From Paraphysomonas bandaiensis (taxonomy: Eukaryota > Protista > Chrysophyceae): a stretch of 64,000 nt of DNA. The notes below the pieces were generated by a model. It was given only the letters and a program-made list of their open reading frames with translations, was not told the DNA's origin and searched no databases. Shown piece after piece: positions 20,481 to 63,542 of the stretch (positions are counted from its first letter, which is position 1; the number at the start of each line of letters is the position of its first letter). The stretch covers positions 178,881 to 242,880 of the forward strand of contig CBFFRP010000370.1 in assembly GCA_965644295.1 (NCBI GenBank), in the 5' to 3' direction. Made by a program: the position numbers and the translations under genes.

Positions 20481-23400
20481 TTAAATCCCAACGCCTTCAG
20501 ATGAGCCGGTTCTGCACTCCGCAGCCGAACCTCTATTGCTGGCAGAAACATGGTTGGAGAAGGCCACACTAAGTCTCCGCAGATCCAAGTCGTGGCGCTG
20601 CAACGCGGTAGAGAGACTTCTCTCTATCCCTATACATCGCTGAAGAAAGCCCACCTTATTTTCGACCATTTCATGCGGTAATTGTACATCGTGGAGAAAG
20701 GATTCCATACTTTTCACTACAGATTTTAGAGACTCTTCCAGTGAAGTCATACGTTTCATGAATACGGCATTAATTATTTTCTTGGATGCTCTTTTCTCCT
20801 TCTTCTGCTGCTTTTCTAAGTATGATTGGTGGACCTCCCAAAACGTGCTCGCAGCCACTGTAAGAGGCATGGCAAGGTAAAATGCACCAAAAAGCATTAG
20901 AAATATACTCATAATCTGTCCAATATTTGTAACTGGGACAATTTCACCGTACCCCACAGAAGTCAGTGTAACAATCGAAAACCATAATGCATCCAAGACG
21001 TTCGAGAACTTGGATTCCTCTCCCAGCTTGTTGACGGATATGCGTCGTCCATCCTTCAGCGTGCCCGCGATATCGTCAGGCACATCACAGTTGCTATCAC
21101 CAACGTAGCAAGCAGTCCCCTTCTCGACCTCATATAGAAGAAGCGCGAATACAGTGACTATAAAAAATAGCAGCATCAATATGCCTACGATCTGCCGCCA
21201 AGCTTTGTTCGCAGTGGTCACTAGCACCTGGGAGGCACTAAAATGCCTCGTAATCTTAAATAATCGAAACACCTGCGAAAATATAAGTAACCTCAAATTG
21301 AAATGCCAAAATATTGCAAACATCAACATACAATAAAGAAATGGACACTACTCACCTTGATTGACTTGAGCATAACCAAAAGAATGGGCTCAGGTGACGA
21401 GGCCAGGATAGCGAAGTCGAGGCTGAAATTGGGCTCCCTCAACGCAGTGATGATGTCAACGTAAAATGGGGCGACTGACAGCATATCAAACACATTCAGT
21501 ATGTCCATGAAAAACCCATACAAGGAGTTAGACACAAATATTCGCAAGAATATCTCCACAGTGAAGCAGAAATTGACAAATATCTCTAGAGGAACCCATC
21601 CATGATTGCCGTCCACAATCTGGACAGCGTCATATTTACACTCTATGCGCGTACACACCGCCTGAATTTGGTGCATTTTGTCGCGGGATACGATGAAGTC
21701 AGGGGCCCTAAAGTTAGAAGAGAGCTGGTCGCTGGTCTCAAAGGGAAGGTTATCTTCGTCAGCGCAGGTGACATTGGTATATCTTGCTCCGAAGTTAATA
21801 CCATGTCCAAAGCAATCCAAATCATTGCAGTTGTACCGCAGCCTCTGATTTGTGACGCCAGTGGAGTTGTGCACGAAACAACCGGCATCCAGAGAAGGGT
21901 CGTCTTTGTCCATGCAGTAGACGCCCAAAACTTTTCCACAGAGATACGAATCCTCCCCATAATGTGAAAAAGTGGGCAGCGTCTGTGTGTATAGCATAAA
22001 TACTGATAAAAGGATCAAAAATATGAAAAAATACTGCAGCATGCGCGCCCCTTTGGAGGAGTGGGGAAATTCCATTAACATCCATATCCTTGTTCGCAAG
22101 GACTTAGGGTTCTGCACAGCTCGCTCCATGTTCTTCGCGAAGTCTTCGCTGCTCCTCCACTTGTTAGCAATGTCTGGGGCGGATTTTGCCATCTTGACTA
22201 GGAATGATATAGAGTCTTTATTCTTAGATCCCAGGAATTTTCGTGTGATCGCGATACTCCATTCAGAGCTGGAGAGCCTGTTAAGCCCCCGTAGGGCTCT
22301 TGATACCTCCCTTGACCCACGACGAGCCTCCCTAGAACGAGGATTGCTAACTGCTACCTCACGACGTTTATGATCCAGCTTGTGTTTCGAGTCCGATGTA
22401 GGCTTCATTTCCACCCCTTCCCCTTCTTCGCCAACTACCGCCAATAAACCAGTACCAGATGTCCGGACAGGTCTCCGCCCAAATTCACTCTTGTGACTGT
22501 CTCCTTCCTCGTTACCATCACAATGGCATGTCGTCGTTGCAGTGTTTGCACTTCCTACGACGCCATTTCGACTGAAGGACATACTCTCTTCTTCGTCAGA
22601 AACAGGTGTCACAGTACGAATTACTTTAGACTTAGAAGGAGATTTATGCGAGAAAGGCCAACGCATCGAATGATTCTGAGAGGATGGGGAAGATTCAGGG
22701 GTACTGAACTCGTCTTCTTCCCCTTCAACGAGATCCGGTACTTGCTGTTGCAGTTCCGCACCAGAAACGAATGAAGATAAGATTTCTTCTGATCCCATAT
22801 CATCCTTCTCATCCACTTGACACCCCTCCAATTCATTATCATACTGCTCATCCAAGGGGACTAGTGTACACTCCCTTTCAGCATTGGGTTTAATGGTGCT
22901 CTTACGGAAAACACTAATTTTCCGTTGCTCCTTAGTCACTTCACCTTCCGTTAACGTCTCTACCGCGGTTCTAATATTGTACAACAGGGGTGCAATCCAT
23001 CCCCTCAGTTCGCATATGGCCAGGAGTATGGCAGGCGTCATCTTAGTTGCCGACGCTGTCAAGACATTGAGTTCTCGCAAAGCCTTCTCCACATTTCGCC
23101 GGCACTCTAATAAGGGAGACATTACTGCGTGCGCCATCAAGTCCGCCACTTCCGGGGAAATTCTGATATCTGCTTTGCTATCAATCTTCCCCGGCGACAC
23201 AACACCATCTCTTCCTGATGTTGATGAAGCTGAGGTCTGTCCCTGATGTAGACTCTGTCCCTCCGCTACTCGTACCCCTTCAGCGGCCTTCTCAATTACA
23301 AGCGAACATTCTTCGTCAGCCAGACCCTCCCAAGCACTGCTGTACTCATTGCCGATAATAGCTAGTGGCATTGACAAGAAGAGGGACCCGAAGAGCATTA

Positions 23401-25354
23401 CAACCACAGATACTACCCTGGCGGGAAGGAATGATGGCACTTGGTTTCCATAGCCAGCTACGCACACCACAGTTAGAAATCATTCACTTTCTTATATAGG
23501 CAAATTCCCACAGATATACACACGATCACACAGTACACATGTACAGAACTGTATCAACTTACTTGTGGTCATGGTTACGACGGAAAAGAAACACGCATCG
23601 AAGAGATTCTCCCAGGCACATGTCTCAAAGTTATAACAGGGCTCCATAAAGTATAGAACTACCCCAAAAAATATATTGAAAAGAAGAAAAAAGAAGAGGG
23701 GTAGTACCAAGTGCACCATGGAGCGGCTCAGAGCGATTCGGATAGCGCGCACTGGGGGAATATCTTTCGAGGCACGAAGAATTTTCCCAGAAGACAAAAG
23801 GTCAAGGCATCTTAAAAGTAATCGCGGGAACTGACTAAGATGTTTATCTGCAGGATAAAGATACACAATTCGGACTACAAATGGCACGACACAGCAGACA
23901 TCGAAAACAAACAATACGCATTGAAAGATATCATTCATAAACTTCTCGGCTACATCTTTATTCTTCAGGAAGATGCCTGTAGCCACAGCAATACGACAGA
24001 AAGCGTCAAAGCACATCGGTACCCAACATATGACCTGAATAGTGATGTATGTCTAGCGGAAAGAGAGCACATCAGTTAGAGTATAAGAGAGCAAATGGGA
24101 GAAAACATATGAGTGAGAGCATATAAACTATCAAATGTGATATACGAGTAAAAGAGGTCAGAGAGTATGAGAGAATAAGAGGTCAAGTAATAGAGCATAA
24201 CAGATCTCATACAAGGTGTACCTGAAAATGTATATGAGTGTGTATATGAGTGTGTGTTTATATGTGAGTGTATATATATAACTGGGTTTATATATAACAG
24301 TATATATATAAGAGTGTGTAAAAATATATGAGAGCATATATTTGAGTGTATATATGTATGACTGTGTTTATATTCGTATATATATATGAGTGTATATATA
24401 TATGAATGTGTATATGTGAGTGAGTGTATATATGTATGAGTGTGTTTATATTAGTATATGTATAGGAGTGTATATATATGAGTGTGTATATGTGAGTGTA
24501 TATATAAGAGTGTGTATATGTGAGTGTGTGTATATGAGTGTATATATGTATGAGTGTGTTTATATTCGTATATATATATGAGTGTATATATGAGTATGTG
24601 TATAATAGTGTGTATACATGAGTGTGTTTATGTGAGTGAGTGTGTATATGTGAGTGAGTGTGTATATGTGAGTGTGTGTATATGAGTGTATATATATGAG
24701 AGTCAATATATGAGTGTATATATATGAGAGTCAATATATGAGTGTATATATATGAGAGTCAATATATGAGTGTATATATGAGTATGTGTATAAGAGTGTG
24801 TATACATGAGTGTGTATATATGAGTCTGTGTTAGTATATGACTATGAGTGTGTGTTTGTGTGTGGGACTCACCTGTTCATTGGGCATATGCGGATAAGTA
24901 GACATGTCCTTCCGCCCCTCGTAGTGGTTACGTCCATCAACAGTCTCCATCGCAAGACACACAGCATTGAGTATAACACACATGCTCATGATGAAGCTCC
25001 ATCTTGAGGCCCATGCAGACGACCTCGGCTCTGTTAACAACAGCACCAAATCATACAACTCCACCATACGGAACCCCCGCCGAGAGAGAGAGAGAGAGAT
25101 AGGGCACCGCAGGCTGTGTGTTTGTTGTGGATACTCTGGAGGCAGGTCTATATGTGTGCTGTGACAGTGTGGAGAGGTGTGCTGGGATGTTATGCATGGG
25201 AAGAACGGCAGGGACTACAGGACCAGTATACACGTCATGTATGTAGAATTCTTATACGCAGTAGTGCCATCTATACTGCTCTGTACACTGTACTACAGAA
25301 TGTAGTCTGGAACCTGAACTACGATCGTACGACTACTGTATTTGCATCACCCAT
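20481..25354 (-). CDS. Voltage-gated K+ channel-like protein with two tandem 6TM modules
   Basis: Two pore loops, FFSVVTMTTTGYGNQVP (spliced across 23459-23562) and WFSIVTLTSVGYGEIVP; two pre-S1 EPxSS/FPHSS motifs; two S6 segments (LSMPL, LAMPL). Start uncertain. Confidence 0.88.
24230..24860. repeat. TG/TA/GA low-complexity tract inside a Kv-channel intron
   Basis: Degenerate TATATGAGTG repeats. Confidence 0.85.
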
Positions 25355-25375
25355 GATTGGACTGAAGAAGTATAC

Positions 25376-25512
25376 ATGTATGTATGTATGTATGTATGTA
25401 TGTATGTATGTATGTATGTATGTATGTATGTATGTATGTATGTATGTATGTATGTATGTATGTATGTATGTATGTGTGTATGTGTGTGTGTACGTGTGTG
25501 TACGTGTGTATG
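25376..25512. repeat. (ATGT)n microsatellite between divergent genes
   Basis: About 24 perfect ATGT units followed by a TG-rich tail. Confidence 0.95.
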
Positions 25513-28644: not shown

Positions 28645-30375
28645 CCTCTGATAACACGCGCCAGTGAGTCCTAGGGCACACTATCAATAAGGCGAACCTC
28701 ACAATCCTAATCGAATAGAGTTTGTGAGTCTAGTCAAGCATCCGGGCTAGTTAGCCTTAAGGACAGAGAGCGAAAGTGGTTGCACCTTGGTAGTATCGCC
28801 TAATAGCATTATATTATAAGGATTAAGCATTAGTTAGTTAAATTGTTTTGCTACATTATTACTGAGTTCTGACTATTACACGCCTAACGCTAATAATTAT
28901 ACTTACATCCTTACCATCAGAACTTCTGAATTCATCGGAACTTTCACTATATATTACTATTATATTGAAAGTCTTATTTTTAGCAATAGGCGTTAAAACC
29001 CTGCACCAATTAGTGGCTAGAAGAATGCTAGTCATACTAGTTAGACTACTACCCGTAACTAATCAATACAAACTCTTTTATCCTATTATTTAACGCTACA
29101 GAAGCTGCTTGTGCGTCGCCGCAAGCACCAAGGTGCAACCACTTCCGTTCTTAGTGTGTGTTATGAGGCTCGCCATGATCGTGTGTCCTGGGACTCACCG
29201 GCGCGTGTGATCTGGAGGTCTCCTCTTGGGATGAGACTCCACTCGCTATATGATAGATAGCCTTATGTACCTCACGGGGACTGACTTATTAGCCTTATGG
29301 CAGTTAGGGGAAACAGTAATATGCCCTTCTGAGATTGGCGATCTGGTGGCCTTCCTTTAGGCAGTGTTCCAAGTGGCTCGGAGGTATGTGGATGAAGGTC
29401 TTGCAAAAGGTTATGGCCTACTGTGAAGAAGCGTCGAAATCGGCTCTTTTGCTGTCTTAGCCAGCGGTAGAGAACACATGCAAGAGGGTGTATAGCTGTA
29501 CAGGGGTGGGATGTGAGGGTCATCCGGTGTGTCCAGCTACAGGGAATCGAGAGGGAGAGTGATGGTGCAAGAGAGGCAACTTCTGATTGAGGAGAGTGAG
29601 ACTGCGCAACTGAACAAGAGTCACTGAGGTCGAGTACTCTGATAGACCTATGCACGAGATGATCGTGATGACCCTGTCCCGGATGCCCTTGAGGTGGGCC
29701 CATTCCCGGATGCCTGTTTATTCGTCAGGGCCCAAAAAGACGTCTACACAAGTGACACTTATCGGTGTCCCTGGTACTACACAAGCATTCGGCTATGAGT
29801 GGGCAGAAGTATATCATCTGCTGATTATGTTTGCGGCTCACGTTAGTTTCCCAGAGACAATCTCTCCGGTACTTATCCCCCAGAACACCACGAAAAGGTG
29901 CGAGTCCGACTTTGTTGAGGGGGAACTTTCACTAACACTTTTTTTCCAGCTCGCTCTCTGTGACTTTATGCTCCTCATTGTTTGTAGTTGTAGCGCCATG
30001 TATATGTACTATGCCATAACAATGTGAATAAACATAAATATATATAATAATGGGTTTTATTTACTTCGATGTTATATAGTCAGCAGATATATTGTTCTGC
30101 CCACTCATAGCCAAATGCTTGTGTGGTACAAGGGACACTAATAAGTGTCACTTGTGTAGACGTCTTTGGGCCCTGACGAATAAACAGGCATCCGGGAATG
30201 GGCCCACCTCAAGGGCATCCGGGACAGGGCCCACCAGAAGGGTAACCGGGGTATTGGGCTGCCTGCTGAAGTTAAGCATCCGGGATGTTCACCTTAAGAA
30301 CTCAAAACACCTGAAGTCAGCAGATGTCAGGTATATCAACATTCTGCTTGCTCCCTGCGTTTGCTTTGAGTGATT
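28645..30375. mobile_element. Cluster of four copies of the dispersed repeat family in alternating orientation
   Basis: 28645-28908 (+), 28966-29670 (-, near-identical to 51228-51932), 29672-29938 (-), 30075-30375 (+). Confidence 0.8.
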
Positions 30376-39030: not shown

Positions 39031-39265
39031 CTGTGGCTATACACACTGAGGTGTAGTGTGAAGTGCTCTCTCTATGTATGTATATGTATAGTCACTAACA
39101 GGAACTGTATCGCCTACACTGTATACGTATATGTGTATTGCACTCTTATGAACACGAAGAGCTGATACTGACACCTTGACGATGACAACTAGGACTCCGA
39201 TGAACTTATACCCTCGGAACTAACTGTCTGCCACTGCCTAACACAGAAACATATCGATACTTGCC

Positions 39266-40243
39266 CATACAGGTACAGTATAGTACTTGCGGAGTGATAT
39301 CGATATACATACACATACAGGTACAGTATAGTACTTGCGGAGTGATATCGATATACATACACATACAGGTACAGTATAGTACTTGCGGAGTGATATCGAT
39401 ATACATACACATACAGGTACAGTATAGTACTTGCGGAGTGATATCGATATACATACACATACAGGTACAGTATAGTACTTGCGGAGTGATATCGATATAC
39501 ATACACATACAGGTACAGTATAGTACTTGCGGAGTGATATCGATATACATACACATACAGGTACAGTATAGTACTTGTGGAGTGATATCGATATACATAC
39601 ACATACAGGTACAGTATAGTACTTGCGGAGTGATATCGATATACATACACATACAGGTACAGTATAGTACTTGCGGAGTGATATCGATATACATACACAT
39701 ACAGGTACAGTATAGTACTTGTGGAGTGATATCGATATACATACACATGTACTTGCGGAGTGATATCGATATACATACACATACAGGTACAGTATAGTAC
39801 TTGCGGAGTGATATCGATATACATACACATACAGGTACAGTATAGTACTTGCGGAGTGATATCGATATACATACACATACAGGTACAGTATAGTACTTGC
39901 GGAGTGATATCGATATACATACACATACAGGTACAGTATAGTACTTGTGGAGTGATATCGATATACATACACATACAGGTACAGTATAGTACTTGTGGAG
40001 TGACATGCATACGTATACAGGTACAGTACTGTAATATCGGTATACATACACGTACAGGTACGGTACTTGTGGAGTGATATTGATATACTTACACATACAG
40101 GTACGGTACTTGTGGAGTGATATTGATATACTTACACATACAGGTACGGTACTTGTGGAGTGATATTGATATACTTACACATACAGGTACGGTACTTGTG
40201 GAGTGATATTGATATACTTACACATACAGGTACGGTACTTGTG
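39266..40243. repeat. 48-bp minisatellite (~15 units) followed by a few 43-bp variant units
   Basis: Unit CATACAGGTACAGTATAGTACTTG(C/T)GGAGTGATATCGATATACATACA; one internally deleted unit near 39748. Confidence 0.97.
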
Positions 40244-40915
40244 TAGATCTGGTATAGGACATCCCATACAGCAGTACAGTTCTCTGTCACATCACGCACG
40301 TCCTCCTCGTATCATATCCTGGTATCCCGATATCTACCAATAGGAATCCAGCATACAGTATCTTCGCATGTGCGTGATGCATACGATACAAACCAGAGCA
40401 TTCCTCATATTACTATCGATACCTTCAAACGTCACTTCAGGTATAATTGAGACACATGAGGACCCATCAGCTGCAATGAGAATGACAGTAAGAGCCGATA
40501 CGCATATCCCACTCTGTAGTTTCTCTCGTGTATAACTCTCTGTGCGCTCCTCTTTAAGCTCCCTACCAAACGAAAAACTACCAGCGTAGTTCTTAAAGCA
40601 CACTATAGCCGCCAGATCGCCCATACAATTACAGCACAATAAACAACGAACAGTTCATTCACTTTTGTGTGGAGGCTACTTGTTTAAATCCCAGTAGCCT
40701 CATTCAGTAAGCACATATATGTCCATATGGTTCCGAATAAGGAAGAAGGAAGACTGATCAGCCATACGAGTTAAGTGGAGTGTTGCTAATAACATTTATA
40801 GTAGTGGATAGTGAAACTATGTAGTGGATAGAGGGCGTTGCATGCGTACACAGAGCACAGTATAATAACTATAACTGTAAATCAAACATGTTTAGAGTGT
40901 TATTAGATATATTTT

Positions 40916-42408
40916 GGGAAATATTATTTAACCTACTCAATTTGGTTGACAAACCTAGTCATACCAAAATTGGTGGAATAACCTAGTATTAGTAAGAAAT
41001 GGCTCAACCTAGTCGTTCGTATATCCTATGATTACGCACTGTGACTGTCTAAGATACAATTTACACCACACAATAATATATTAATGGCTTACAGAGCATT
41101 AAAACAAACAGTCAAACATAACAATAAACTCGTATATACATATCTATTTAACATAGATGTATGTCTATCTATAGCTTATAACTATATAGCGATGGGTCTC
41201 CAGTGAGTGTTATGTAAAAGAGGGGTTCATGAAGCTGTGGATATAGCTCACACTATGATCTGCAGGACATCTTGAGACCTTCATGTGCTGTGAGCGATAG
41301 CGTTTATCTTCCTTCATTTCAAGTGGACTGTATAGAGCTCCAGCAGAATTTCAGTATCGTGAGGAGTGTGTCGTGCGATGGAGCGATTAGTCATACAGTA
41401 TCATGAGGTGTGTGTCGCGCAGTGGATCCATTATACATTATTATAGGCACCACAGTACATATATATATGTTGTAAAGGAGAGCTCTTACATATATAATAT
41501 CTGATTATTACAACATAAGAAAGGCTGTGTCTAGTATTCGTAAGTAGTGTGGCTATGGATTTAAGGAGCTATGAAATTCGCTACTTGGGGAGTGGAGTAG
41601 GTGGCGTGTAAGTGAGAGTCGGCTAGTTCCTGTGTTAGGGGTGCTGTCTATGGCAAGTAGCAGCTGTTTCCGGAGTGGATGTGCAGGCCTGGACCGTGGG
41701 CGGGATACAGTATTACAGGCACCACAGTATATATATGCTGTAAAGGAGATCTCTTACAAAATCAAGAGAAAAGTCTATGTTGCTATCGCTCTTGTCTACA
41801 ACTGTCCGCGGCTGCGGGCTGCGGGCTGCGGGATAGCCGCAATTGATCCTACTCTCTAGCCGTACATTACTTGTGTGGTATACGCAGTTTATGACTCGAC
41901 AGAATTAGATACAATAGATAATATAATAGTAAATTTACAAGGTCAAATAACAAGTAATGACACAGATATAACAAACTTACAATCTCAAAATACAACATTA
42001 CAGAACAATATAAATACTAAACATGATTTAATCGATGTAAATAATAAACTTGATTCATCATTAGTATATGATTCAAGATATATATATATACTCTGCATAT
42101 ATATATTAGAAAGCTGTGGATCTGCACCGGACATGGTTACAAGAAACTGTCCAATTTTCATTGACATGTGACGTTGAAATGTGATGTGTGACGTGTATAT
42201 AATATCTACATTCATTAATTGATGGCTAGAGTATGCTCCCATGTTTGAATAAAAATTTTCATTTTTGACTAGGTGAAAACCATAAACACCTAGTCAATCT
42301 AGTCAGTGTAAACTGAAATATGAATTATTAAATGACTAGGTTTGTACATCAATTTTAGTATGGCTAGGAAATTACACCAAATTGACTATAGGTCCAATAA
42401 TAGATCCC
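40916..42408. mobile_element. Non-autonomous Mutator-like element (Pack-MULE-like) with captured coding fragment
   Basis: 9-bp TSD ATATATTTT at 40907-40915 and 42409-42417; imperfect ~70-100 bp TIRs starting GGGA and containing repeated CCTAGT; no transposase. Confidence 0.8.
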
Positions 42409-45400
42409 ATATATTTTTAACACTTTATATTGCGATATCTGTATTCACTCTGCGATATCTGCATTATTATATAGTGTACTGCTTCTAATCATAGCTGCAA
42501 ATGAAAAAGCAATATAAGTCTATTATTGTCAACCAGGGTGGAGGAGCAGCAGAAGAAACGACCCCCGAAGAGGTTAAAGGTGTGTTTTAGTGGGTGAAAA
42601 TTCCACATATAGTTGACTGCTAGTTATACATGTATCTTTAAAAGATTTCACATCTATTTTACCTATGGGACTAGATAGTCATAGCATAAAGATTACTGTG
42701 ATCACTGTTGTTTTGTCTCACTGCAATCTACATTGAGTGGGAGTATTAGAATATGGATCTTATTCAAGTATATTCAGTATATGTCACTTGAAAACGATGT
42801 ACAAATGCTGTGATAATATTGTGAAACTGAAATAGTTTGATCTTTCAAGATATGCTTAGTAACGAGAGGTCGCATATGTAGGAGATTATGCGTGGAACAA
42901 AATGAGTCTGTGTTGTTTATCACAACTTCGTGTAAACGATATTAATAAATAACGACAAGTTTTCTCTGAGATCTAGTTAAGAATGAGCACTTTCCAGCAA
43001 TTATAAATTATTATAGATCAGAATAAAAAATGGTACCACAATGCACTATCTACTTGTACTGAGAAACTTCAATTACTTTCTATAGTATCTTTGTAGTTTA
43101 ATACGTATAGTAAATCAGTATGTTAGTTTTATATATATACAATGAATATATATGATCTAGTGGCGAAAACACATTTACGTAAATAGGGGCATATATCCCA
43201 CGATTCGAACATCACGGAAAATTTCGCTTGATTATCTCTCATTGTCTTTCGACGGCCCTCACTGAGACGACTACATATAGCCGAGAGAAGTATACGTTGT
43301 GTTTTACATATAAAACATAACGCTGGTTGAAGAGTCCAACAAACCACATAAAGAAATTAAGAACATATATTTTAAATAAATGAGGTGAAAAAAATACGAG
43401 CATGTCACCCAACGTACAAATATGATGCAATCACCCTACAGCCCTTCAGCAGCCACAATGGCCGCTGAAATGATATCACGGGCACTAATTCTATAGTTCT
43501 GAAGAATTCCTTTCTCCCCAATATCAGCAATTTTAAAATCAAGTAATGTCACACGCATATTGACTTTAACGGACCATATTTCACCACGTACTGTTGAAAC
43601 CACAACAGGTCGGCCATATTCCAAAACACTCCAGATCTACGTTATAAAATCTATAAGAACAACCTATAGTGCATTTGATTTTTTACCTTATCCCCCCTGA
43701 AGAGAGACAGTGACACACCGGTGTCCACTTCCAGCTCGAATATTGCTACAATTTCTTCTGCTCCACGACCGGTCACGGTCCCAGCTCCTGAATTTTCCTT
43801 ATAACAACCCTCTTCGACTTCGCAACGACCCATCCTCCCTTCGAGCATGTCTCCAGTGAGTGTTATGTAAAAGAGGGGTTCATGAAGCTGTGGATATAGC
43901 TCACACTATGATCTGCAGGACATCTTGAGACCTTCATGTGCTGTGAGCGATAGCGTTTATCTTCCTTCATTTCAAGTGGACTGTATAGAGCTCCAGCAGA
44001 ATTTCAGTATCGTGAGGAGTGTGTCGTGCGATGGAGCGATTAGTCATACAGTATCATGAGGTGTGTGTCGCGCAGTGGATCCATTATACATTATTATAGG
44101 CACCACAGTACATATATATATGTTGTAAAGGAGAGCTCTTACATATATAATATCTGATTATTACAACATAAGAAAGGCTGTGTCTAGTATTCGTAAGTAG
44201 TGTGGCTATGGATTTAAGGAGCTATGAAATTCGCTACTTGGGGAGTGGAGTAGGTGGCGTGTAAGTGAGAGTCGGCTAGTTCCTGTGTTAGGGGTGCTGT
44301 CTATGGCAAGTAGCAGCTGTTTCCGGAGTGGATGTGCAGGCCTGGACCGTGGGCGGGATACAGTATTACAGGCACCACAGTATATATATGCTGTAAAGGA
44401 GATCTCTTACAAAATCAAGAGAAAAGTCTATGTTGCTATCGCTCTTGTCTACAACTGTCCGCGGCTGCGGGCTGCGGGCTGCGGGATAGCCGCAATTGAT
44501 CCTACTCTCTAGCCGTACATTACTTGTGTGGTATACGCAGTTTATGACTCGACAGAATTAGATACAATAGATAATATAATAGTAAATTTACAAGGTCAAA
44601 TAACAAGTAATGATACAGATATAACAAACTTACAAGCCCAAGATATAACATTACAGAACAGCATTGATACCAAACATGATATAATAGATGTAAATAATAA
44701 GTTGGATTCTTCATTGGTATATGATTCAAGATATATATATATACTCTGCATATATATATTAGAAAGCTGTGGATCTGCACCGGACATGGTTACAAGAAAC
44801 TGTCCAATTTTCATTGACATGTGACGTTGAAATGTGATGTGTGACGTGTATATAATATCTACATTCATTAATTGATGGCTAGAGTATGCTCCCATGTTTG
44901 AATAAAAATTTTCATTTTTGACTAGGTGAAAACCATAAACACCTAGTCAATCTAGTCAGTGTAAACTGAAATATGAATTATTAAATGACTAGGTTTGTAC
45001 ATCAATTTTAGTATGGCTAGGAAATTACACCAAATTGACTATAGGTCCAATAATAGATCCCATATATTTTTAACACTTTATATTGCGATATCTGCATTCA
45101 CTCTGCGATATCTGCATTATTATATAGTGTACTGCTTCTAATCATAGCTGCAAATGAAAAAGCAATATAAGTCTATTATTGTCAACCAGGGTGGAGGAGC
45201 AGCAGAAGAAACGACCCCCGAAGAGGTTAAAGGTGTGTTTTAGTGGGTGAAAATTCCACATATAGTTGACTGCTAGTTATACATGTATCTTTAAAAGATT
45301 TCACATCTATTTTACCTATGGGACTAGATAGTCATAGCATAAAGATTACTGTGATCACTGTTGTTTTGTCTCACTGCAATCTACATTGAGTGGGAGTATT

Positions 45401-46498
45401 AGAATATGGATCTTATTCAAGTATATTCAGTATATGTCACTTGAAAACGATGTACAAATGCTGTGATAATATTGTGAAACTGAAATAGTTTGATCTTTCA
45501 AGATATGCTTAGTAACGAGAGGTCGCATATGTAGGAGATTATGCGTGGAACAAAATGAGTCTGTGTTGTTTATCACAACTTCGTGTAAACGATATTAATA
45601 AATAACGACAAGTTTTCTCTGAGATCTAGTTAAGAATGAGCACTTTCCAGCAATTATAAATTATTATAGATCAGAATAAAAAATGGTACCACAATGCACT
45701 ATCTACTTGTACTGAGAAACTTCAATTACTTTCTATAGTATCTTTGTAGTTTAATACGTATAGTAAATCAGTATGTTAGTTTTATATATATACAATGAAT
45801 ATATATGATCTAGTGGCGAAAACACATTTACGTAAATAGGGGCATATATCCCACGATTCGAACATCACGGAAAATTTCGCTTGATTATCTCTCATTGTCT
45901 TTCGACGGCCCTCACTGAGACGACTACATATAGCCGAGAGAAGTATACGTTGTGTTTTACATATAAAACATAACGCTGGTTGAAGAGTCCAACAAACCAC
46001 ATAAAGAAATTAAGAACATATATTTTAAATAAATGAGGTGAAAAAAATACGAGCATGTCACCCAACGTACAAATATGATGCAATCACCCTACAGCCCTTC
46101 AGCAGCCACAATGGCCGCTGAAATGATATCACGGGCACTAATTCTATAGTTCTGAAGAATTCCTTTCTCCCCAATATCAGCAATTTTAAAATCAAGTAAT
46201 GTCACACGCATATTGACTTTAACGGACCATATTTCACCACGTACTGTTGAAACCACAACAGGTCGGCCATATTCCAAAACACTCCAGATCTACGTTATAA
46301 AATCTATAAGAACAACCTATAGTGCATTTGATTTTTTACCTTATCCCCCCTGAAGAGAGACAGTGACACACCGGTGTCCACTTCCAGCTCGAATATTGCT
46401 ACAATTTCTTCTGCTCCACGACCGGTCACGGTCCCAGCTCCTGAATTTTCCTTATAACAACCCTCTTCGACTTCGCAACGACCCATCCTCCCTTCGAG
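41196..46498. repeat. 2.65-kb tandem segmental duplication (41196-43845 and 43849-46498)
   Basis: Offset 2653 bp; 3-nt CAT at the junction; near-identical except 41961-42063 vs 44614-44716. Confidence 0.97.
43436..43845 (-). pseudogene. Duplicated 3' fragment of the prolyl 4-hydroxylase gene
   Basis: Identical to 46089-46498; lacks the catalytic exons. Confidence 0.85.
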
Positions 46499-48074
46499 AT
46501 GACTACGGTCTCGCTGCATGGAGAGGAATGGGCGCATCGGTCCATTCCACACCCACACAGTCGCCACCCACTTGATACCCTGGCATCGTTACACAGTGAG
46601 GATATCGCAAGGCCACACACCATGTAGATATTTACCTCTAATACCGGGCATCCTCCGTGCAGAGAGAGATAATCAAGTGTCAGATTAGGAGTCTGCGAGT
46701 AAAATAATACTGCCTGTAGCCTATGTGGCTTCACCAGCATTCCGCTCCTGAGAAATGTCAGCGCGACTCAGATATCAGACTAAACTGATTACCCACCCGC
46801 AGACTTTTGCTGCCTCCATCCCAGCGCTATCAAAAAAAACACAGATACTGAGAATACAGTAATCATTACTGTCAATGAGCCCACCTCACTCTTAACGCAT
46901 CGGTTTCGTTTGTTCTACGTCTTCTCCGTCCACCATCAGCTTCACTCTGTTCCCACCACTCCTCCGCCATCGGAAACGTCGTCTCCCCGCCCCTCGAAGT
47001 GTCTGTGAGATAAAATAAAACCGTTGCAAACCTGTTGGTTCCACTATCTGAAAATAGTTTAGTGTTCAGTCCAAGGCACAGCCGCGGAACCAACCGGCAA
47101 TATCCCAGTCGTGGTCCGCAAACTCTTCAGAATGTGGTGTGGGCGTGTGATAGTCTGACAGACATTGTGAGATGAAACAGACTTGAATTGTGTAGCATAT
47201 ACCATGATGTAAATTGTAGTACTCCCCCGAACCGTAACGAAGGATCTGAATCGGACCAACCCAGGTGTCATCGTACTGATGTATGCGTAACAACTCGAAA
47301 CATCGCTTCCGCAGAGTCAATGAGACCTGATAAAGCAAACAATTATGCTAATACAATCCGAACTAAACTCAAACCTCGGAGGTGTCATCCCATGCATTCT
47401 GGCTCGTTCGTATTGAAGTGACGCTTCTTGTTGTCCCAGTCACGGACCTGGATAGGCGATCATCCTCGTCCGTTATGGACAGCGCATGTTCCACTAACTC
47501 AGTAGCTTCACTATCGGATATGAGGTGCTCCACTGAGAATACTCTTGGAGACTGTGATAGAGTGATTAGCTCAACGGGACCCACCGATCCTTGTGATACA
47601 CTGATACCGGACACTTCCACACGATGCCCAAGCTCGAACGATGGCCATATGAACAGCCTGCCTTCTTCGACCAGCACCACAGAAGTGTTTGCAGTTATAT
47701 CGTGACAGCTGATGTCATCCAATCGCTCTCCGCTGACAGTATACAGCTGCGTATAAGTGACATGATATGATACAGGCGTCTCTACAAGATACGGACGCAC
47801 CCTCCCCTTCCCATAAGACAGATTAGAGGCGTGTAAGATGTACTCAGAGGGGCTCTTGAATGAGAGGCACTCATCAGAGTCGAACAGAGCGACTGCTTCT
47901 GTGTACCTCCACTCTCCATTAGAGTATACGGGGATCTACATACACAACTATGAGCACATACATACATACATATCACTCACAAGCAGCAGATAACAACACA
48001 ACAACACTCACATATTTCACACTCTTATCTCCGCATATGAGTGAGAGACAACAGAGGAAAGCACACCAGCGCAT
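46089..48074 (-). CDS. Prolyl 4-hydroxylase-like 2OG-Fe(II) oxygenase, secreted (multi-exon)
   Basis: LSQSPRVFSVEHLISDSE, RTSQNAWD, IQILRYGSGEYYNLHH/DY, NRFATVLFYLTD..GGETTFP, SLHGGCPVL, KWVATVWVWN; signal-peptide-like MRWCAFLCCLSL. Confidence 0.9.
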
Positions 48075-48877: not shown

Positions 48878-50883
48878 CAGGCTTGCGTAATGCGTAACAA
48901 TTAATTGGTTTTAAAAGTGTTAATTTCAATCAGGGCTAGGAAACAATATATTGCAATACTATTGTTAGAGAGCGTTCAATCAATACTATTGATGGAGATT
49001 TTAAACAGGCCCAACAATACAATTACAATATATTGCAATACTATTGTTAGAGAGCGTTCAATCAATACTATTGATGGAGATTTTAAACAGGCCCAACAAT
49101 ACAATTTCAATATATTGCAATATATTAGTATGACTAATCAGTAAGTAAACACATCCGTAGATTCTATTTTTAGTATTAGTCATTAAGATCACATGACAAC
49201 CAAACCAACAACTGCTTATAGCTACTAAAAGTCCACCTCGTCCTCATCCTCTGAGCCATTATCGGTGACGTCAACATCATCATATTCATTAACAGAATTT
49301 ATTGAAATATGCTAGTATTCGGCCACAACTGTCGAATCGCCTTCAGAAACAACAACATATTAAGTAGGATGGATACTTTTGCGAAACACTGATATAATAT
49401 GTTTAGCTGCGCTGAACAGACGCTCCCATGTATTGAAAGTACATACCAGGGCCTGGTAACCGTTAATGACCCGTGGACCTGTACGCTTCTTAAGTTTTTG
49501 AGCTGACTGAAGATTTTTATTCGCATAGTCAACATCAGTTTCATCATCCTTTGTAATGTTGTAATCAATTTCTCGGTTATTTATATCCATTTTGCACCCT
49601 ACAGTTGAGAATCTTCTCTTATATGACTATCATAATATTGATCGCAATATATTGCAATATATCGTGAGATACTTTAACAGAAACAATATTGATGGGATTT
49701 TTGGCCGGTCGACCAATCAATATATTTACAATATATTGTGCAATGTATTGCAATTCAATATATTGTTTCCTAGCCCTGATTTCAATTATTATTATTGGTA
49801 AATGTTGCCAATTAATTGCAATTAATTGGCTGGCTGAATTATATATAGCATCTAGCATCTTACGATATCTAGCTACTGGTCTTAGCTACTTATCATTTTA
49901 TTAATCTTAATTAGGGTTAGTATACACTTTTACCACGGCATGCAAGAGTAATATATCGTGTCAAATATCGTTGGCAAATAACAAGTAGCGCACCTTCATA
50001 ACGATCGTCTAGATACATAACATATATAATGTGATAGCATATTGAACTGCTTCGAAATATTCAAGTATAGTAGTGTAAATGACGTTATAAGTGTATTCGT
50101 TAGGTATCACTATCAGAGGAAGAGAAGTATGTGTTTGTGCAAGAATACCTTAATACAGATGATCCGTAGGGTGCGTGTACAACTATAATGGACTAGAAGC
50201 ATTGGATAGCCATATACATATCATTCTTTTTTATTCAACAGGATGGCATCGAATGAACAAATTTGATGATTTAAATCGTCAGTACCCTGGGATGATATTT
50301 CACCTCGGTGCAGACGCGAAAATTGTTCACAACGAGACTTCGAGAGAGTAGTAGTCAAAATTCAGCGCGGTAGGGAAGAGGAACTGAACCACGCTGAAAA
50401 AACACAGATGCGACGCTTTTTGATAAAAGATGTACCTGCACACGAAGGTTAACTTGATGAAGAGAAAGATGACGAGGGGGAAGATGAGGCCATTCGTTTA
50501 CTTAAAGACAACCGAAAGCGCCAAAAAGCACGTATCAAACTTCCAATACGATATCGTTGCATGAAGTACTTGTATAGCACTACCAACATGTTTGTGAGAG
50601 GTTTTTTAGCAGAGCTCAGATTGTCATGACTAGATTTTCGCAAGCGAATGACACTTAGACACCTTGAAATTAATAATGTTGAGTTTTCTGGGTGAAAATG
50701 TTAATGTTTCTTTGAGATGAGATTATAATTCAGAAAGTTATTCTAGAATCTATTAATAGAATTAAAGGTAATTAATTGGCAATCATTGCCAATAATTGGA
50801 TGCTTGATTAATAAAATTGCAATAATTATTGTTGGACACCTGTCACCAATTAATTGCCAATTAAAATTTGTTACACAAGCCTG
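48878..50883 (+). mobile_element. Non-autonomous hAT DNA transposon with decayed transposase C-terminus
   Basis: 8-bp TSD CTCCATAT (48870-48877, 50884-50891); TIR CAGGCTTG(C/T)GTAA; remnants HLGADAKIVHN, VVKIQRG, ERFFS at 50260-50670. Confidence 0.9.
48931..49778 (-). mobile_element. Second hAT element nested in the first
   Basis: TIR CAGGGCTAGGAAACAATATATTG; 8-bp TSD ATTTCAAT (48923-48930, 49779-49786); minus-strand ERLFSAAKHIISVFRKSIHP dimerisation-domain remnant. Confidence 0.92.
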
Positions 50884-51227: not shown

Positions 51228-53238
51228 TGAATGTCTGATTATTTAGCAATAGGCGTTGAAAGCCTGCACCAATTAGTGGCTAGAAGAATGCTAGTCATAC
51301 TAGTTAGACTACTACCCGTAACTAATCAATACAAACTCTTTTATCCTACTATTTAACGCTACAGAAGCTGCTTGTGCGTCGCCGCAAGCACCAAGGTGCA
51401 ACCACTTCCGTTCTTAGTGTGTGTTATGAGGCTCGCCATGATCGTGTGTCCTGGGACTCACCGGCGCGTGTGATCTGGAGGTCTCCTCTTGGGATGAGAC
51501 TCCACTCGCTATATGATAGATAGCCTTATGTACCTCACGGGGACTGACTTATTAGCCTTATGGCAGTTAGGGGAAACAGTAATATGCCCTTCTGAGATTG
51601 GCGATCTGGTGGCCTTCCTTTAGGCATTGTTCCAAGTGGCTCGGAGGTATGTGGATGAAGGTCTTGCAAAAGGTTATGGCCTACTGTGAAGAAGCGTCGA
51701 AATCGGCTCTTTTGCTGTCTTAGCCAGCGGTAGAGAACACATGCAAGAGGGTGTATAGCTGTACAGGGGTGGGATGTGAGGGTCATCCGGTGTGTCCAGC
51801 TACAGGGAGTCGAGAGGGAGTGTGATGGTGCAAGAGAGGCAACATCTGATTGAGGGGAGTGAGACTGCGCAACAGAACAAGAGTCACTGAGGTCGAGTAC
51901 TCTGATAGACCTATGCACGAGATGATCGTGATGATGATGATGGTCTGGAGGAGACACTCGGACGTCCTCAGCTGCTCTTGTTAGTGTCTGTGTTGGTGCA
52001 GGGGGGTACAGACTGAGGCATAGAGAGTGTGTGTAAGGAAGATGACGGCAAGGTATCAGAGACGAAGGGAGGGGAGATGGTTTGTCTGGGGGTTTTCTAG
52101 GAGGAGGTAGAGTGTACTGTGTGTGTGTATGACACTGCAGTGGTGTTATGAGTGTGTTGGACAGAGAGAGAGAGCTGGTGATGTGTCCAACAGTACAGGT
52201 AGACAGGTACATGGACATGGTGATGTGTCCAACAGTACAGGTATACAGGTACATGGACATGGTGATGTGTCCAGCAGTACAGGTAGACAGGTACATGGAC
52301 ATGGTGATGTGTCCAACAGCAGTAGAGGTATACACGGAATGGTATACATCCTGTAGGACACAGTAGTACAGTAGTCGAGTATACCGTATGGAATACAGTG
52401 TCTATCCAATGAGATGGATGGGCTGTGGGGGTGATAGGTGAACAGGGTGAGGGGGTAGCCTGCTGGGTGGATGGACCACAGACAAACCATGTTGGGTTGG
52501 GTTGAGTGGGCGGCAGAAGGCAGCCCTGTTGCACAGTTGAGAGGGATCGAGAGTATTCAGTGATTGCATAGGGGGTCCATGGGGGTCGTTTTCGTGAGCC
52601 TGCTCGCACGAGCCATGTTCTGAGAGGTTGTAGCCGTAGAAAGCGATGGGTGAGACGAAGTTGTCTGCTGAGGGGATAGCACATAGGTGCGGTCAGCGCT
52701 GCATTGGTGCAGGCACGTGGTTTAACTGAAGTAGTTGAGTAGGGTGAAGGTTGCAAGGCCAGGCAGGGGGGCTTGGAGCGTGTACAACATGGTGTGACAG
52801 GTAATTTGTCAGAAGCGTGGTGGTCAACAAAATGCAGCAGTAAGGGAGTGTAAAAGGCCCTGGGCACACTGATGTGACTCAGCCACGGTCTCAATAGAGA
52901 CATTGGGCTTGGAGCTGGTTAATAGGGTGAAACTTTATGTTGGACTGTATTTGCCATCGTAGGGCAGAGAATATCTCTTAAGCTGCTGTTAACAAGCATC
53001 GGGGAATGGGCCCAGCTCAAAGTCATCCATGGTACTGGGCTGCCAAAAGTCAAGCATGGGCTGTTCAGCTAAAGGAAAGAGAGAGTGAAAGTGGTTGCAC
53101 CTTGGTGCTGGCGGTGACGCACAAGCAGCTTTCGTAGCGCCAAATAGTAGGATATCAGAGTTAAGCACTAGGTAGATAAATTGTTTAGCTATATTAGTTC
53201 TGACTTTTACACGCCTATTGCTAATAATCAGACATTCA
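51228..53238. mobile_element. ~2-kb element with non-identical inverted ends (longest member of the dispersed repeat family)
   Basis: Both ends read TGAATGTCTGATTAT(T)TAGCAATAGGCGT inward; C-rich minus-strand ORFs 51535-52335 and 52097-52903; 42-bp internal tandem repeat 52177-52320; no TSD seen. Confidence 0.7.
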
Positions 53239-59096: not shown

Positions 59097-61558
59097 ATTG
59101 AAGTCGTCATCTTATGGCATATCAGCATAGATTACCTATTCACCAGCTATACATGTATGCACTCAGTGTGTTTATGTTCATGCAACAGTTCAAGATCTAG
59201 ATATGTGGTATATGTTCTGTGTCTTCGCTCTGTGTGCTTCATACAACATATATAGACCATGTATGTGGTATATGTTCTCTGTATGTGCTTCATACAACAC
59301 ATTGAGACCATATATGTGGTATATGATCTGTATGTTCGCTGTGTGTGCTTTACACAGCACACAGAGACTGTATATGTGAAATGTGCTCTGTATATTCACT
59401 CTGCGTGCTTCATACAACATATATAGACCATGTATGTGGTATATGTTCTCTGTATGTGCTTCATACAACACATTGAGACCATATATGTGGTATATGATCT
59501 GTATGTTTGCTGTGTGTGCTTTACACAGCACACAGAGACTGTATATGTGAAATGTGCTCTGTATATTCACTCTGCGTGCTTCATACAACACGCAAGAACC
59601 ATATATGTGGTATATGATCTGTATGTTCGCTGTGTGTGCTTTACACAGCACACAGAGACTCTCTATATATTCACTCTGCGTGCTTCATACAACACGCAAG
59701 AACTATATATGTGGAATATGTTGTGAATATATTACTCTGTGCTCTTCATGCAACATACAGGGACTATGTATGTGTTATATGGTGCGTAGTATCACACTTT
59801 ACCCCTCATACAACACGCAAAGACTATATATGTGGTATATGATATATGCGTTCACTCTGTGCGCACCATGCGACACGCAGGGACTATATAAGTATTGTAT
59901 GATGTATGTATTATGTATTCACTATGTGCTCTTTGCTCTTCATGCAATACACAAGGACTATTGAAGTGCTATATGATGTGCATTTTTGAACTCTGTGCTT
60001 CATATAACACAGAGAGACTATTGAAGTGTTTTTAGTGATCTGTATGTTTACTATGTGCGCTTCGTACAGTACACAAGCACTCAATGTATGGTATATGACG
60101 TGTAGTTTCGCTCTCTATGCTTCGTATATAGTATTTAGCACATAGCGACTATGTAGGTAGTAGGCGCAGCACTTTGCAGTTATATATAGCACTGGGTTTA
60201 TATGTTTAGTCTGTAAACTCCGTCGAGTAGAATTTTAATAACAGTGGAAAATGACATTAAATTGTCATATTTTATTGTGTAGTATTAGTACTTAGAGTGC
60301 TACTGCCAACTGTACACGATGGGATAGGAAGCCAGAATAGTACAATAATAAAGTACTTATGTAAATAGTAAACCTTTAAAGCAAAAAATACGTTATCTAT
60401 TAAAAACTAAAAACAAGCGTGCACTGTGGATTACAGTGTTCAAATTAAAAAATCAGCAACATCAAACTTAACCATACACTGTGCTAGCTACAACCATATG
60501 CTACGCTACTTCCATCGCCCCATTGTCGTCAGGTGTTCTTAGTGCCTCGATTGCTTTATGAAGTCTGTACTGACGCCTCTTGGCGATACATATTCCTCGT
60601 AACAATACTTTTTCTTCGTCTCCATTTTCTCTGGCCTCAGCCTTGGCTGTCGGCCTATCCAAGCTATATCCCTATGTACTATATACTGTGTGCGAAGCAT
60701 AGTGAGTAAACACATACATCATATAACACTGATATAATCCCCGGCTACTATACGAAGCATAGAGAGCGAAACTACACGTCATATACCATACATTGAGTGC
60801 TTGTGTACTGTACGAAGCGCACATAGTAAACATACAGATCACTAAAAACACTTCAATAGTCTCTCTGTGTTATATGAAGCACAGAGTGCAAAAATACACA
60901 TCATATAGCACTTAAATAGTCCTTGTGTATTGCATGAAGAGCAATGAGCACATAGTGAATACATAATACATACATCATACAATACTTATATAGTCCCTGC
61001 GTGTCGCATGGTGCGCACAGAGTGAACGCATATATCATATACCACATATATAGTCTTTGCGTGTTGTATGAGGGGCAAAGTGTGATACTACGCACCATAT
61101 AACACATACATAGTCCCTGTATGTTGCATGAAGAGCACAGAGTAATATATTCACATCATATTCCACATATATAGTTCTTGCGTGTTGTATGAAGCACGCA
61201 GAGTGAATATACAGACAGTCTATGTGTGCTGTGTAAAGCACACACAGCGAACATACAGATCATATACCACATACATGGTCTATATATGTTGTATGAAGCA
61301 CGCAGAGTGAGTATACAGAGCACATTTCACATATACAGTCTCTGTGTGCTGTGTAAAGCACACACAGCGAACATACAGATCATATACCACATATATGGTC
61401 TATATATGTTGTATGAAGCACACAGAGCGAAGACACAGAACATATACCACATATCTAGATCTTGAACTGTTGCATGAACATAAACACACTGAGTGCATAC
61501 ATGTATAGCTGGTGAATAGGTAATCTATGCTGATATGCCATAAGATGACGACTTCAAT
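59097..61558. mobile_element. Foldback element: ~0.8-1.0 kb inverted arms built of ~42-43 bp subrepeats around a ~0.6 kb spacer
   Basis: 59097-~60133 is the near-perfect reverse complement of ~60746-61558; the left arm has additional subrepeat blocks. Confidence 0.88.
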
Positions 61559-62199
61559 ATTCGTGAAAACACAGTCTTAAAATATTGTAACGAGAATACG
61601 TAATAATAACAAGGTTATGTGTAGCACTAGCATCTATAATCATGTAAACAAGCAGCAGAATGCAACAAGAGACAATATAACACACTTATATACTCTTCCA
61701 CTCAAATACCTACACTTCAATGCAGACGACACAAACACAATGAAGCCATATATCGCATAGATCCGATATATATCCGCAAATACACTACAAATGAGACTAA
61801 TAATGAAGTGAGGTCTGCGCATGGAAGACTCCCTATTGTCTACATAGCAGCTGAATGATTATCTCCCCTAAAAATACAAACAATGAGCTTACAGGAAGCG
61901 GCAACAACGCTGAGTACATCACCAGGTTCAGAGGACCAGGAATACATCCCTCTCACTCCCCATCATCTGATATTTCAACCAGATATCAGTGTTGATGTGA
62001 CTAACCACAGAAACTATCCATTCTTATGTATTGGTGTATTTATTATGACAGGAGTGTACAAATATGATGATTTTAAAGGAATATACATACATGTATATCT
62101 ATATGAAGATCCGATTGCAATTCTGATGATAAAAAACACACTAAAGAATGGCACCTCAAAAAACAGCGACACCGGAAAACGGAGCGAGTGGGATACGAC

Positions 62200-63542
62200 C
62201 GACCACAACAACATTTTTATGTCCGTTGTTAAGGGGGTAACAGTGGGGCTGTTAATCGCCATAGCTTTCGTGATGAACATGGTAATTCATCAACTGGATG
62301 TGTCTAACGCATTTCTATATGCAGATATAGAGGGGGATGTATATATAGAAGGCAACTCCGGACTTTCAGCTGCCTGAGGGGTACTGCTTTAAGTTGAAGA
62401 AGTCGTTATACGGGCTTCGAGTTCCCATGATCGTGGTGGAAAACATTGGATAAATTCATACGATCTATACATTTTAAACCATGTGTATTAGACCCGTGTT
62501 GTATTATCAGTATAAGGGCGATGAATTGATATTATTAACGATATGTGGATGATATCCTAGTGTTAGGTCGCGATCGGTCATGCATAGTGAAGGTTATTAA
62601 AAGCTCAACTGTGTGCCCCGGTTTGATATGAGAGGATATGGGCGAGATGGAACATTTTCCTGAATGTTCGAGTCACAAGAACACCTGGTAGATTCGTCTT
62701 GACCAATCAGTATATGCGGCTCAGATCTTAGAAAAGTTTGAAAAGTATCTTGGGTCACCGCGAAAGGTACGGAAGAGTCCCCTACCGGCGGAAGCATATG
62801 GATTTAGTGGCAAAAAGGGGCGCGGCATGAGCATACCGAGGAGGAACAGCTTATAGTAGATAACTTCCCATATCGACTGTTGATAGGTGCATTACTATAT
62901 CTATCGATGAACACGAGGCCGGATATGTGCCTATGCAGTGGGAGTACTGTCTCGGTTCAGTAATAAGGTGAATATTGGAGAAGTATGCAAGCTATTAACA
63001 CATGTGCTTAATATATTCGTGGTTCTATTGACAAAAGGGATTCAATATGGGAGTAGAATGGGTTCGACTTCCATATATTTACTGACGGATTGGGCGGGAG
63101 ATCAGCTCTCCAGGAAGTCCACGTCGGGGTACGTTGGGTTTGCAGCGGGGAGGCCTATAGTCTGGCAGTCCAAACTGCAGACGACAGTGGCAACGTCAAG
63201 CATGCAGTCTGAGTATCAGTGTATTTACTCGGGTCTCCAAGAAGTGCTTTATGGGTTCGGGGGGTGACGGGTGAGATTAAGTTGAGGCTCATCAAACCCA
63301 CACCATTCTTCATCGACAGTCAGAGTGCCCAGGATTTGGCCGAAAACCCAGTGTTCACAAGAAGTCGAAGCACATTTGAGATTAAGTATCACATGGTGAG
63401 AGAGCACGTGGATCCCAATCAGTTCAATACGATTAAGTTAGTGCATGTGCATACATCGCAACAAGCAGCAGATATTTATACAAAGTCATTGGTTGGTTTA
63501 TCATATATGGAGCAGAGAAAGAGAAATCTTGGAGAAAGTTAA
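62200..63542 (+). pseudogene. Decayed Ty1/Copia pol (RT-RNase H), frameshifted
   Basis: HQLDVSNAFLY, KLKKSLYGL, YVDDIL, IGALLYLSMNTRPD, DWAGD..SRKSTSGY, WQSKLQTTVATSS..SEY, QAADIYTKSL spread across frames. Confidence 0.95.

Follow-up and report, generated by a model that had tools for sequence, protein, structure and literature searches.

A virophage- or Polinton-like-virus-type gene fragment within a putative Mutator-like element of Paraphysomonas bandaiensis

In a 64-kb window of Paraphysomonas bandaiensis DNA (i.e., the whole stretch of 64,000 nucleotides that was analysed), an inverted-repeat element of 1,493 bp at 40916-42408 (plus strand) contains a fragment whose origin in a fibre-like gene of a virophage or Polinton-like virus (PLV) is well supported. 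As an account of the whole locus, we favour with moderate confidence a Mutator-like transposon with viral cargo, in which the cargo was acquired by gap-repair capture, was later affected by duplication and gene conversion, and now persists as a non-functional fossil. The window is nuclear eukaryotic DNA with 43% GC and few introns, and its genes include a voltage-gated-type ion channel, a CDC14-like phosphatase, a photolyase, a p25-alpha gene, and the GINS subunit Sld5.

Element ends and transposon identity

The element is bounded by a left terminal inverted repeat (TIR) at 40916-40995 (plus strand) and a right TIR at 42325-42408 (minus strand), both located by alignment of the two ends. The TIRs start at the exact element termini (GGGA... 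and ...TCCC), extend over approximately 80-84 nt and share about 78% identity. Local alignment of the two 100-nt ends gave a score of 37, compared with 9.7 ± 1.8 and a maximum of 24 among 2,000 shuffles. The 9-bp word ATATATTTT flanks the element exactly, at 40907-40915 on the left and 42409-42417 on the right; the match is lost when the boundary is moved by one base in either direction, and the target-site duplication has a length of 9 bp only, since 8 or 10 bp do not fit. The preliminary description had delimited the element at these positions by its TIRs and 9-bp duplication, and both the shuffle-tested end alignment and the exact ATATATTTT pair uphold that delimitation. In addition, both ends carry several subterminal copies of the motif ACCTAGTC. 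The 64-kb window has eight matches to this motif, all of them within the element ends, including the left TIR, or within the duplicated end, against an expectation of 2.1. Judged by their sequence, these ACCTAGTC arrays look like the subterminal binding-site repeats of cut-and-paste transposons.

The duplication length fits the range of 8-11 bp for Mutator-like elements and, together with the long TIRs, suggests that the element is Mutator-like, with the proviso that Merlin elements likewise give target-site duplications of 8-9 bp, so that 9 bp is not exclusive to Mutator. The interior ORFs that were scanned showed no Pfam match and no transposase domain, and the element is thus regarded as non-autonomous. 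No ORF for a MURA-type transposase was found among the window ORFs scanned, and no further copies of the TIRs were found in the 64-kb window, the JGI metagenomes, or IMG/VR. With neither a second copy of the TIRs nor a transposase partner found in these searches, the superfamily assignment and the past mobility of the element are both read from a single copy. A decayed PLV or Polinton was considered as the identity of the whole element and was ruled out by the 9-bp duplication, by the host-like GC of the ends, and by non-viral parts that match no viral locus.

Outside the viral fragment, the remaining interior gave no matches, so that captured cargo is evidenced for one fragment only, and the cargo contains no RNA genes. 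Two repeats are present within it: a 44-bp tandem pair with 79% identity at 41352-41438, and a 58-bp direct repeat at 41433-41490 and 41705-41758, the two copies of which lie 272 bp apart and are 86% identical by BLAST (91-94% in ungapped segments). Both repeats end in (TA)n runs, and neither has a match elsewhere in the window.

The viral fragment: reading frame and composition

Copy 1 of the fragment, at 41887-42078 (plus strand), comprises 64 stop-free codons and reads VYDS...VYDS, i.e., one 59-aa period of a VYDS-bounded repeat. The segment is open in a single frame, a state reached in any forward frame by 0.5% of shuffles. DNA homology to the viral relatives spans approximately 41886-42082, and the fragment is about 195 bp long. 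A second copy at 44540-44731 (plus strand) has 91% amino acid identity to copy 1. Copy 1 has a GC content of 23.4% and copy 2 one of 26.6%, compared with 41% in the rest of the element and the 43% of the window, and the GC content at third codon positions (GC3) is 0.11 and 0.17, respectively, compared with 0.44-0.57 in nine host ORFs of the window. The frame test and the translation agree on what had been described from the letters as an A-rich, stop-free segment encoding one such period, and the GC3 values bear out the accompanying statement that its codon usage is unlike that of host genes. An exon of a host gene was rejected as the identity of the segment, as no canonical donor site follows it, its flanks are without coding potential, and it has no Pfam match.

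Relatives of the fragment

The two fragment copies were combined into a profile, and a search of 1.84 billion representative proteins with this profile (E ≤ 0.001) returned 95 matches. Many of these share only a generic NLQ...SNDTDI...LQ motif that also occurs in tail fibres of phages and surface proteins of bacteria; the matches that cover the whole unit form a specific group (P0002, P0050, P0068, P0030, P0026, P0038, P0052, and P0037). The relatives are long repeat proteins of 1,461-1,730 aa, among which P0002 (1,461 aa) is 78% identical over 45 aa (E 3e-18). A further protein, P0135, is a 265-aa N-terminal piece that shares a 90% cluster with P0026. It contains tandem VYDS-bounded units with the same boundaries as in the window, and 44 of its 52 residues aligned to copy 1 are identical (E 1e-23).

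The closest relative at the DNA level is the contig encoding P0135 (L023; ENA sample ERZ17173241), which is 1,036 bp long, has 29% GC and comes from a marine metagenome. Over the first 87 nt of the fragment, this contig shows 94-95% identity in a match that runs into the contig end, and it matches the remainder at 81-84% over 121 nt via a neighbouring unit. The gene for P0002, located on contig L010, shows 79% nucleotide identity over 87 nt and is surrounded by DNA of 23% GC. Members of the family come from Tara Oceans samples, one of which is a <0.22 µm fraction. Comparison of the fragment peptide alignment with metagenome contigs by means of two patterns gave no match.

A phage origin was considered, as the first matches in IMG/VR were phage tail-fibre genes, including one on a contig (L001) that carries PhoH and a collagen-like tail fibre. 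These genes share the generic motif only, and tblastn against GenBank phages was empty; the phage reading was dropped because the specific family lies on capsid-bearing contigs of virophage or PLV type.

The type of virus

The contigs that carry the family measure 25.3 kb (L011), 21.3 kb (L012-L014), 10.6 kb (L021), 23.5 kb (L022), and 448 kb (L010), and those of approximately 10-25 kb have 23-34% GC. A gene module with conserved order is common to L010, L011, L012, and L022. It consists of a Pox_A32-type packaging ATPase, proteins of approximately 190, 295, and 500 aa, and a protein of approximately 165 aa with a faint match to Peptidase_C5 (an adenain-type protease). Besides the module, L010 has a weak match to an rve integrase and a weak match to D5_N, L011 encodes a primase-helicase, and L012 encodes a lipase-like protein and a large helicase.

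The ~500-aa protein has no match in PDB or Pfam at the sequence level. Its structure was modelled with 30 relatives (mean pLDDT 80.7, pTM 0.83), and the model matches double jelly-roll capsid proteins, namely PBCV-1 Vp54 (E 6e-14), Sputnik (TMq 0.56), and mavirus (TMq 0.50). In a search of BFVD with the same model, the top TMq values (0.55-0.57) belonged to virophage capsid proteins. The ~500-aa protein is thus predicted by modelling to fold as a double jelly-roll major capsid protein. The longest contigs with relatives of this protein cluster at 20-22.5 kb.

Four features define the virophage/Polinton-like-virus assemblage: small genome size, a double jelly-roll capsid, an A32-type ATPase, and a cysteine protease. 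The family genomes are placed in this assemblage as a whole, as being of Polinton-like-virus or virophage type. A giant-virus origin had been suggested by the 448-kb contig with its Pox_A32 gene, and was ruled out by the occurrence of the same neighbourhood on contigs of 10.6-25 kb. The viral fibre-repeat origin given in the preliminary description holds: the homology search with the 59-aa unit found its best relatives among fibre-like giant repeat proteins of virophage/PLV-type genomes, one of the virus groups named there, and not among host genes. The phage and giant-virus options offered alongside are rejected.

We note two observations on the large contigs themselves. On L010 (ENA ERZ25071330, 448 kb, 23% GC), the small-virus module lies within 329615-354000, which may mean that the small virus is integrated into the genome of a giant virus or of an AT-rich eukaryote. 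Separately, a capsid protein 99% identical to that of L010 (P0096) occurs together with a fibre homologue (P0134) on a contig of 374.9 kb.

Entry of the fragment into the element

The direction of transfer is read as from virus to host because the fragment keeps a viral codon composition inside an element of host composition. In the proposed mechanism, viral DNA in the nucleus, either an integrated copy or infecting DNA, would have served as the template. Gap repair or template switching (i.e., a transduplication like that of Pack-MULEs) would have copied approximately 195 bp, corresponding to exactly one repeat unit, into the element, and the element would then have inserted about 3.7 kb past the 3' end of a host gene, giving the 9-bp duplication. 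A later tandem duplication of 2,653 bp would have copied the right part of the element together with the fragment, and approximately 100 bp of one fragment copy would subsequently have been overwritten by gene conversion from a repeat copy elsewhere in the genome.

A search of the 64-kb window with the family proteins (tblastn) found neither the parent viral gene nor another copy of the family, and a scan of the window for low-GC open stretches returned microsatellites only. An integrated virophage or PLV at this locus was rejected, as only the 64-codon fragment and its duplicate are present and no other viral hallmark gene occurs in the 64 kb.

We consider capture of the cargo before transposition most likely. 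The rival to be weighed against it, which we regard as unlikely but deserving of serious attention, is an insertion after transposition, whereby viral DNA was patched as filler into a double-strand break in the resident element; the transposon would then be the landing site of the viral DNA and not its carrier. The shortness of the fragment (~195 bp) and its sharp composition boundaries both speak for such a later insertion, as does the fact that this is the sole known copy of the element, so that the fragment is a putative cargo only. Moreover, the string GTATA is common to the stretch just 5' of the fragment and to the fragment 3' end, which is compatible with microhomology-guided joining. 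However, these features fit gap-repair capture equally well.

Tandem duplication and the divergent patch

A tandem duplication that is absent from the preliminary description includes the right part of the element. Unit 1 (2,653 bp, 41196-43848) starts inside the element and ends inside a copy of a minus-strand host exon, and unit 2 follows at 43849-46501, where identity with unit 1 ends at 46498. The duplicated stretch thus comprises the right 1,213 bp of the element and 1,440 bp of flank. Because the duplication starts inside the element, unit 2 has the fragment, a duplicate of the right TIR (44978-45061, minus strand) and, directly after it, a duplicate of the 9-bp word ATATATTTT (45062-45070), with no left TIR alongside.

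The two units differ at 18 bases, 17 of which fall in a 103-bp patch of the fragment (41961-42063, plus strand), with the remaining one at 42442. Outside the patch, over approximately 2,550 bp, the units are 100% identical apart from this one base. The 17 changes in the patch affect 14 codons, giving eight synonymous changes and six conservative replacements; ten changes are at third positions. In most of the replacements, the viral relatives include some with the alternative residue. From their sequence, the patch differences are of a coding type, like those between two functional versions of the repeat and unlike the junk decay expected after a recent duplication. The coding type of the differences suggests that the second version of the fragment came from another template, and the patch is most likely a short-tract gene conversion from a further genomic copy of the repeat.

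Alternatively, the duplication and its divergent patch could be owed in part to assembly. The full form of this rival, in which the tandem duplication or the patch is an artefact of assembly or polishing and the locus has a single fragment copy, appears improbable to us; examples would be two haplotypes placed one after the other, or one unit mis-polished with reads that stem from other repeat copies. It is odd for a natural duplication to have about 2,550 identical bp and yet 17 differences within 103 bp, and a viral repeat of this kind is expected to be multi-copy. However, the coding type of the differences and the presence of most alternative residues in viral relatives point to a real second template in the genome, and the unit-to-unit junction is a clean novel join.

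A host origin and the question of function

We find it very unlikely that the fragment derives from a host gene family, whether one for a cellular repeat protein or one that goes back to a viral gene domesticated long ago. Repeats of the generic NLQ...SNDTDI...LQ kind are indeed widespread, including in bacterial and phage proteins, and would allow such a source. However, the GC3 of the fragment is far from that of every host gene measured, its specific relatives are all on small virus-type contigs with a capsid gene, its nucleotide identity to the 29%-GC metagenome contig is as high as 94-95%, and the 64 kb of host DNA contain no further copy.

The fragment is most likely a non-functional, neutral fossil. 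That it has been retained as a source of antiviral small RNAs directed against the viral fibre gene seems to us as improbable as the host origin. The sequence lends no direct support to this role, which was suggested in the preliminary description. The one positional hint is that the fragment lies antisense to the minus-strand host gene, approximately 1.4 kb past the last ORF of that gene (in unit 2), so that read-through might in principle produce antisense RNA; its two diverged versions could also be read as updating. However, because the two copies are direct repeats, they would form no hairpin, and only the TIRs can pair. A search for RNA families and promoters gave no evidence for a small-RNA role, and a single piece of 195 bp is what would be expected under neutral capture. 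A more far-reaching form of the idea, in which the element is a working immune memory, with antisense transcripts from the neighbour gene processed to small RNAs and the fragment versions updated from circulating variants, is slightly less probable still. If true, it would parallel, in a protist, the small-RNA memory that insects have of viral fragments.

Comparison with known systems

Pack-MULEs are Mutator-like elements with captured gene fragments and have been described mainly in plants. Like them, the present element is non-autonomous, has long TIRs and a 9-bp duplication, and contains a short internal gene fragment from elsewhere. Unlike them, its cargo piece is viral and not from a host gene, its host is a protist and not a plant, and no parent copy, sister copies, or Mutator transposase partner was found here (in the window; for the TIRs, also in the JGI metagenomes and IMG/VR).

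Endogenous virophages and PLVs are whole or decayed integrants of 15-40 kb that are placed by a virus integrase or recombinase. The present case resembles those of Bigelowiella, Cafeteria, Phaeocystis, and cryptophytes in that low-GC viral DNA lies in a protist chromosome of higher GC, and differs from them in being a single gene piece of ~195 bp inside a cellular transposon, with no other viral gene in 64 kb. In insects, viral fragments sit among transposons in small-RNA clusters. The likeness to these clusters, in which a small part of a viral gene is likewise surrounded by transposon sequence, is positional only, and unlike them, the present locus involves a DNA virus and a protist host and has no cluster context.

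As for the viral gene itself, the longest ORF of PgVV-type PLVs encodes Ltf, a long and repeat-rich protein that resembles phage fibres and is found in virions (10.1101/2022.07.28.501842), and most PLVs code for fibre-like proteins longer than 1,000 aa (PMC12220804). Like the Ltf of PgVV (Gezel-14T), the genes of the present family are the longest ORFs of AT-rich genomes of ~20-25 kb, are repeat-rich, and lie near ATPase and capsid genes, where the likeness is drawn from length, repeats, and gene context. Unlike Ltf, the relatives have a bacterial-surface Ig-like domain as their only Pfam match, with no match to T4 gp36 or to an endosialidase chaperone.

Genomic neighbourhood

The flanking host gene at 46089-47800 (minus strand) has several exons, and its 3' part lies inside the duplication. 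One exon weakly resembles prolyl 4-hydroxylases (E 0.003-0.05), and a comparison of the gene with Pfam gave no match. About 0.7 kb upstream of the element, at 39139-40245, is a satellite array of approximately 21 copies of a 48-bp unit that grades into a 43-bp variant and yields spurious long ORFs on both strands.

Three other TIR-bounded elements occur in the window, at 29672-30229 (arms of 65-145 nt), 48921-49788 (42 nt), and 51334-53162 (81 nt), the second of which includes, at 48943-49106, a perfect tandem repeat of 82 bp. The TIRs of the element at 40916-42408 recur in none of the three, and inspection by eye found no clear target-site duplication around them. A foldback-like structure at 59097-61558 has inverted arms of several hundred nt with 96% identity and internal sub-repeats, and is unrelated to the TIRs of the element. 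The ORF at 61883-62377 contains a fragment of a copia-type reverse transcriptase (RVT_2, E 2e-9), indicating that the host carries LTR retroelements.

The ion-transport channel gene at 20481-23470 (minus strand) is broken up into two ORFs that overlap (20481-21329 and 21323-23470), which may reflect an intron, a frameshift, or an assembly error. The stretch at 24200-25500 has 33% GC, a strong GC skew, and short microsatellite-like repeats, resulting in long spurious open frames.

Implications

The finding joins two known themes, i.e., gene capture by transposons and viral fragments in protist genomes. It indicates that, in a protist, viral DNA can become part of what a cellular cut-and-paste transposon carries, and a literature search found no report of a viral fragment as such transposon cargo in a protist. 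The cargo route could spread pieces of viral genes around the genome, and no such route was found in the literature search either. Furthermore, a patch of coding-type differences between otherwise identical duplicates suggests that further copies of the viral repeat exist in the genome, and an integrated virus may be present elsewhere in the host assembly.

The fragment records an earlier encounter of this host with a virus lineage for which marine metagenomes are the only known source. Host information is missing for most virophages and PLVs of this uncultured kind. The nucleotide match of 94-95% that links host chromosomal DNA to a contig from a marine metagenome provides a host lead for an uncultured virophage or PLV lineage.
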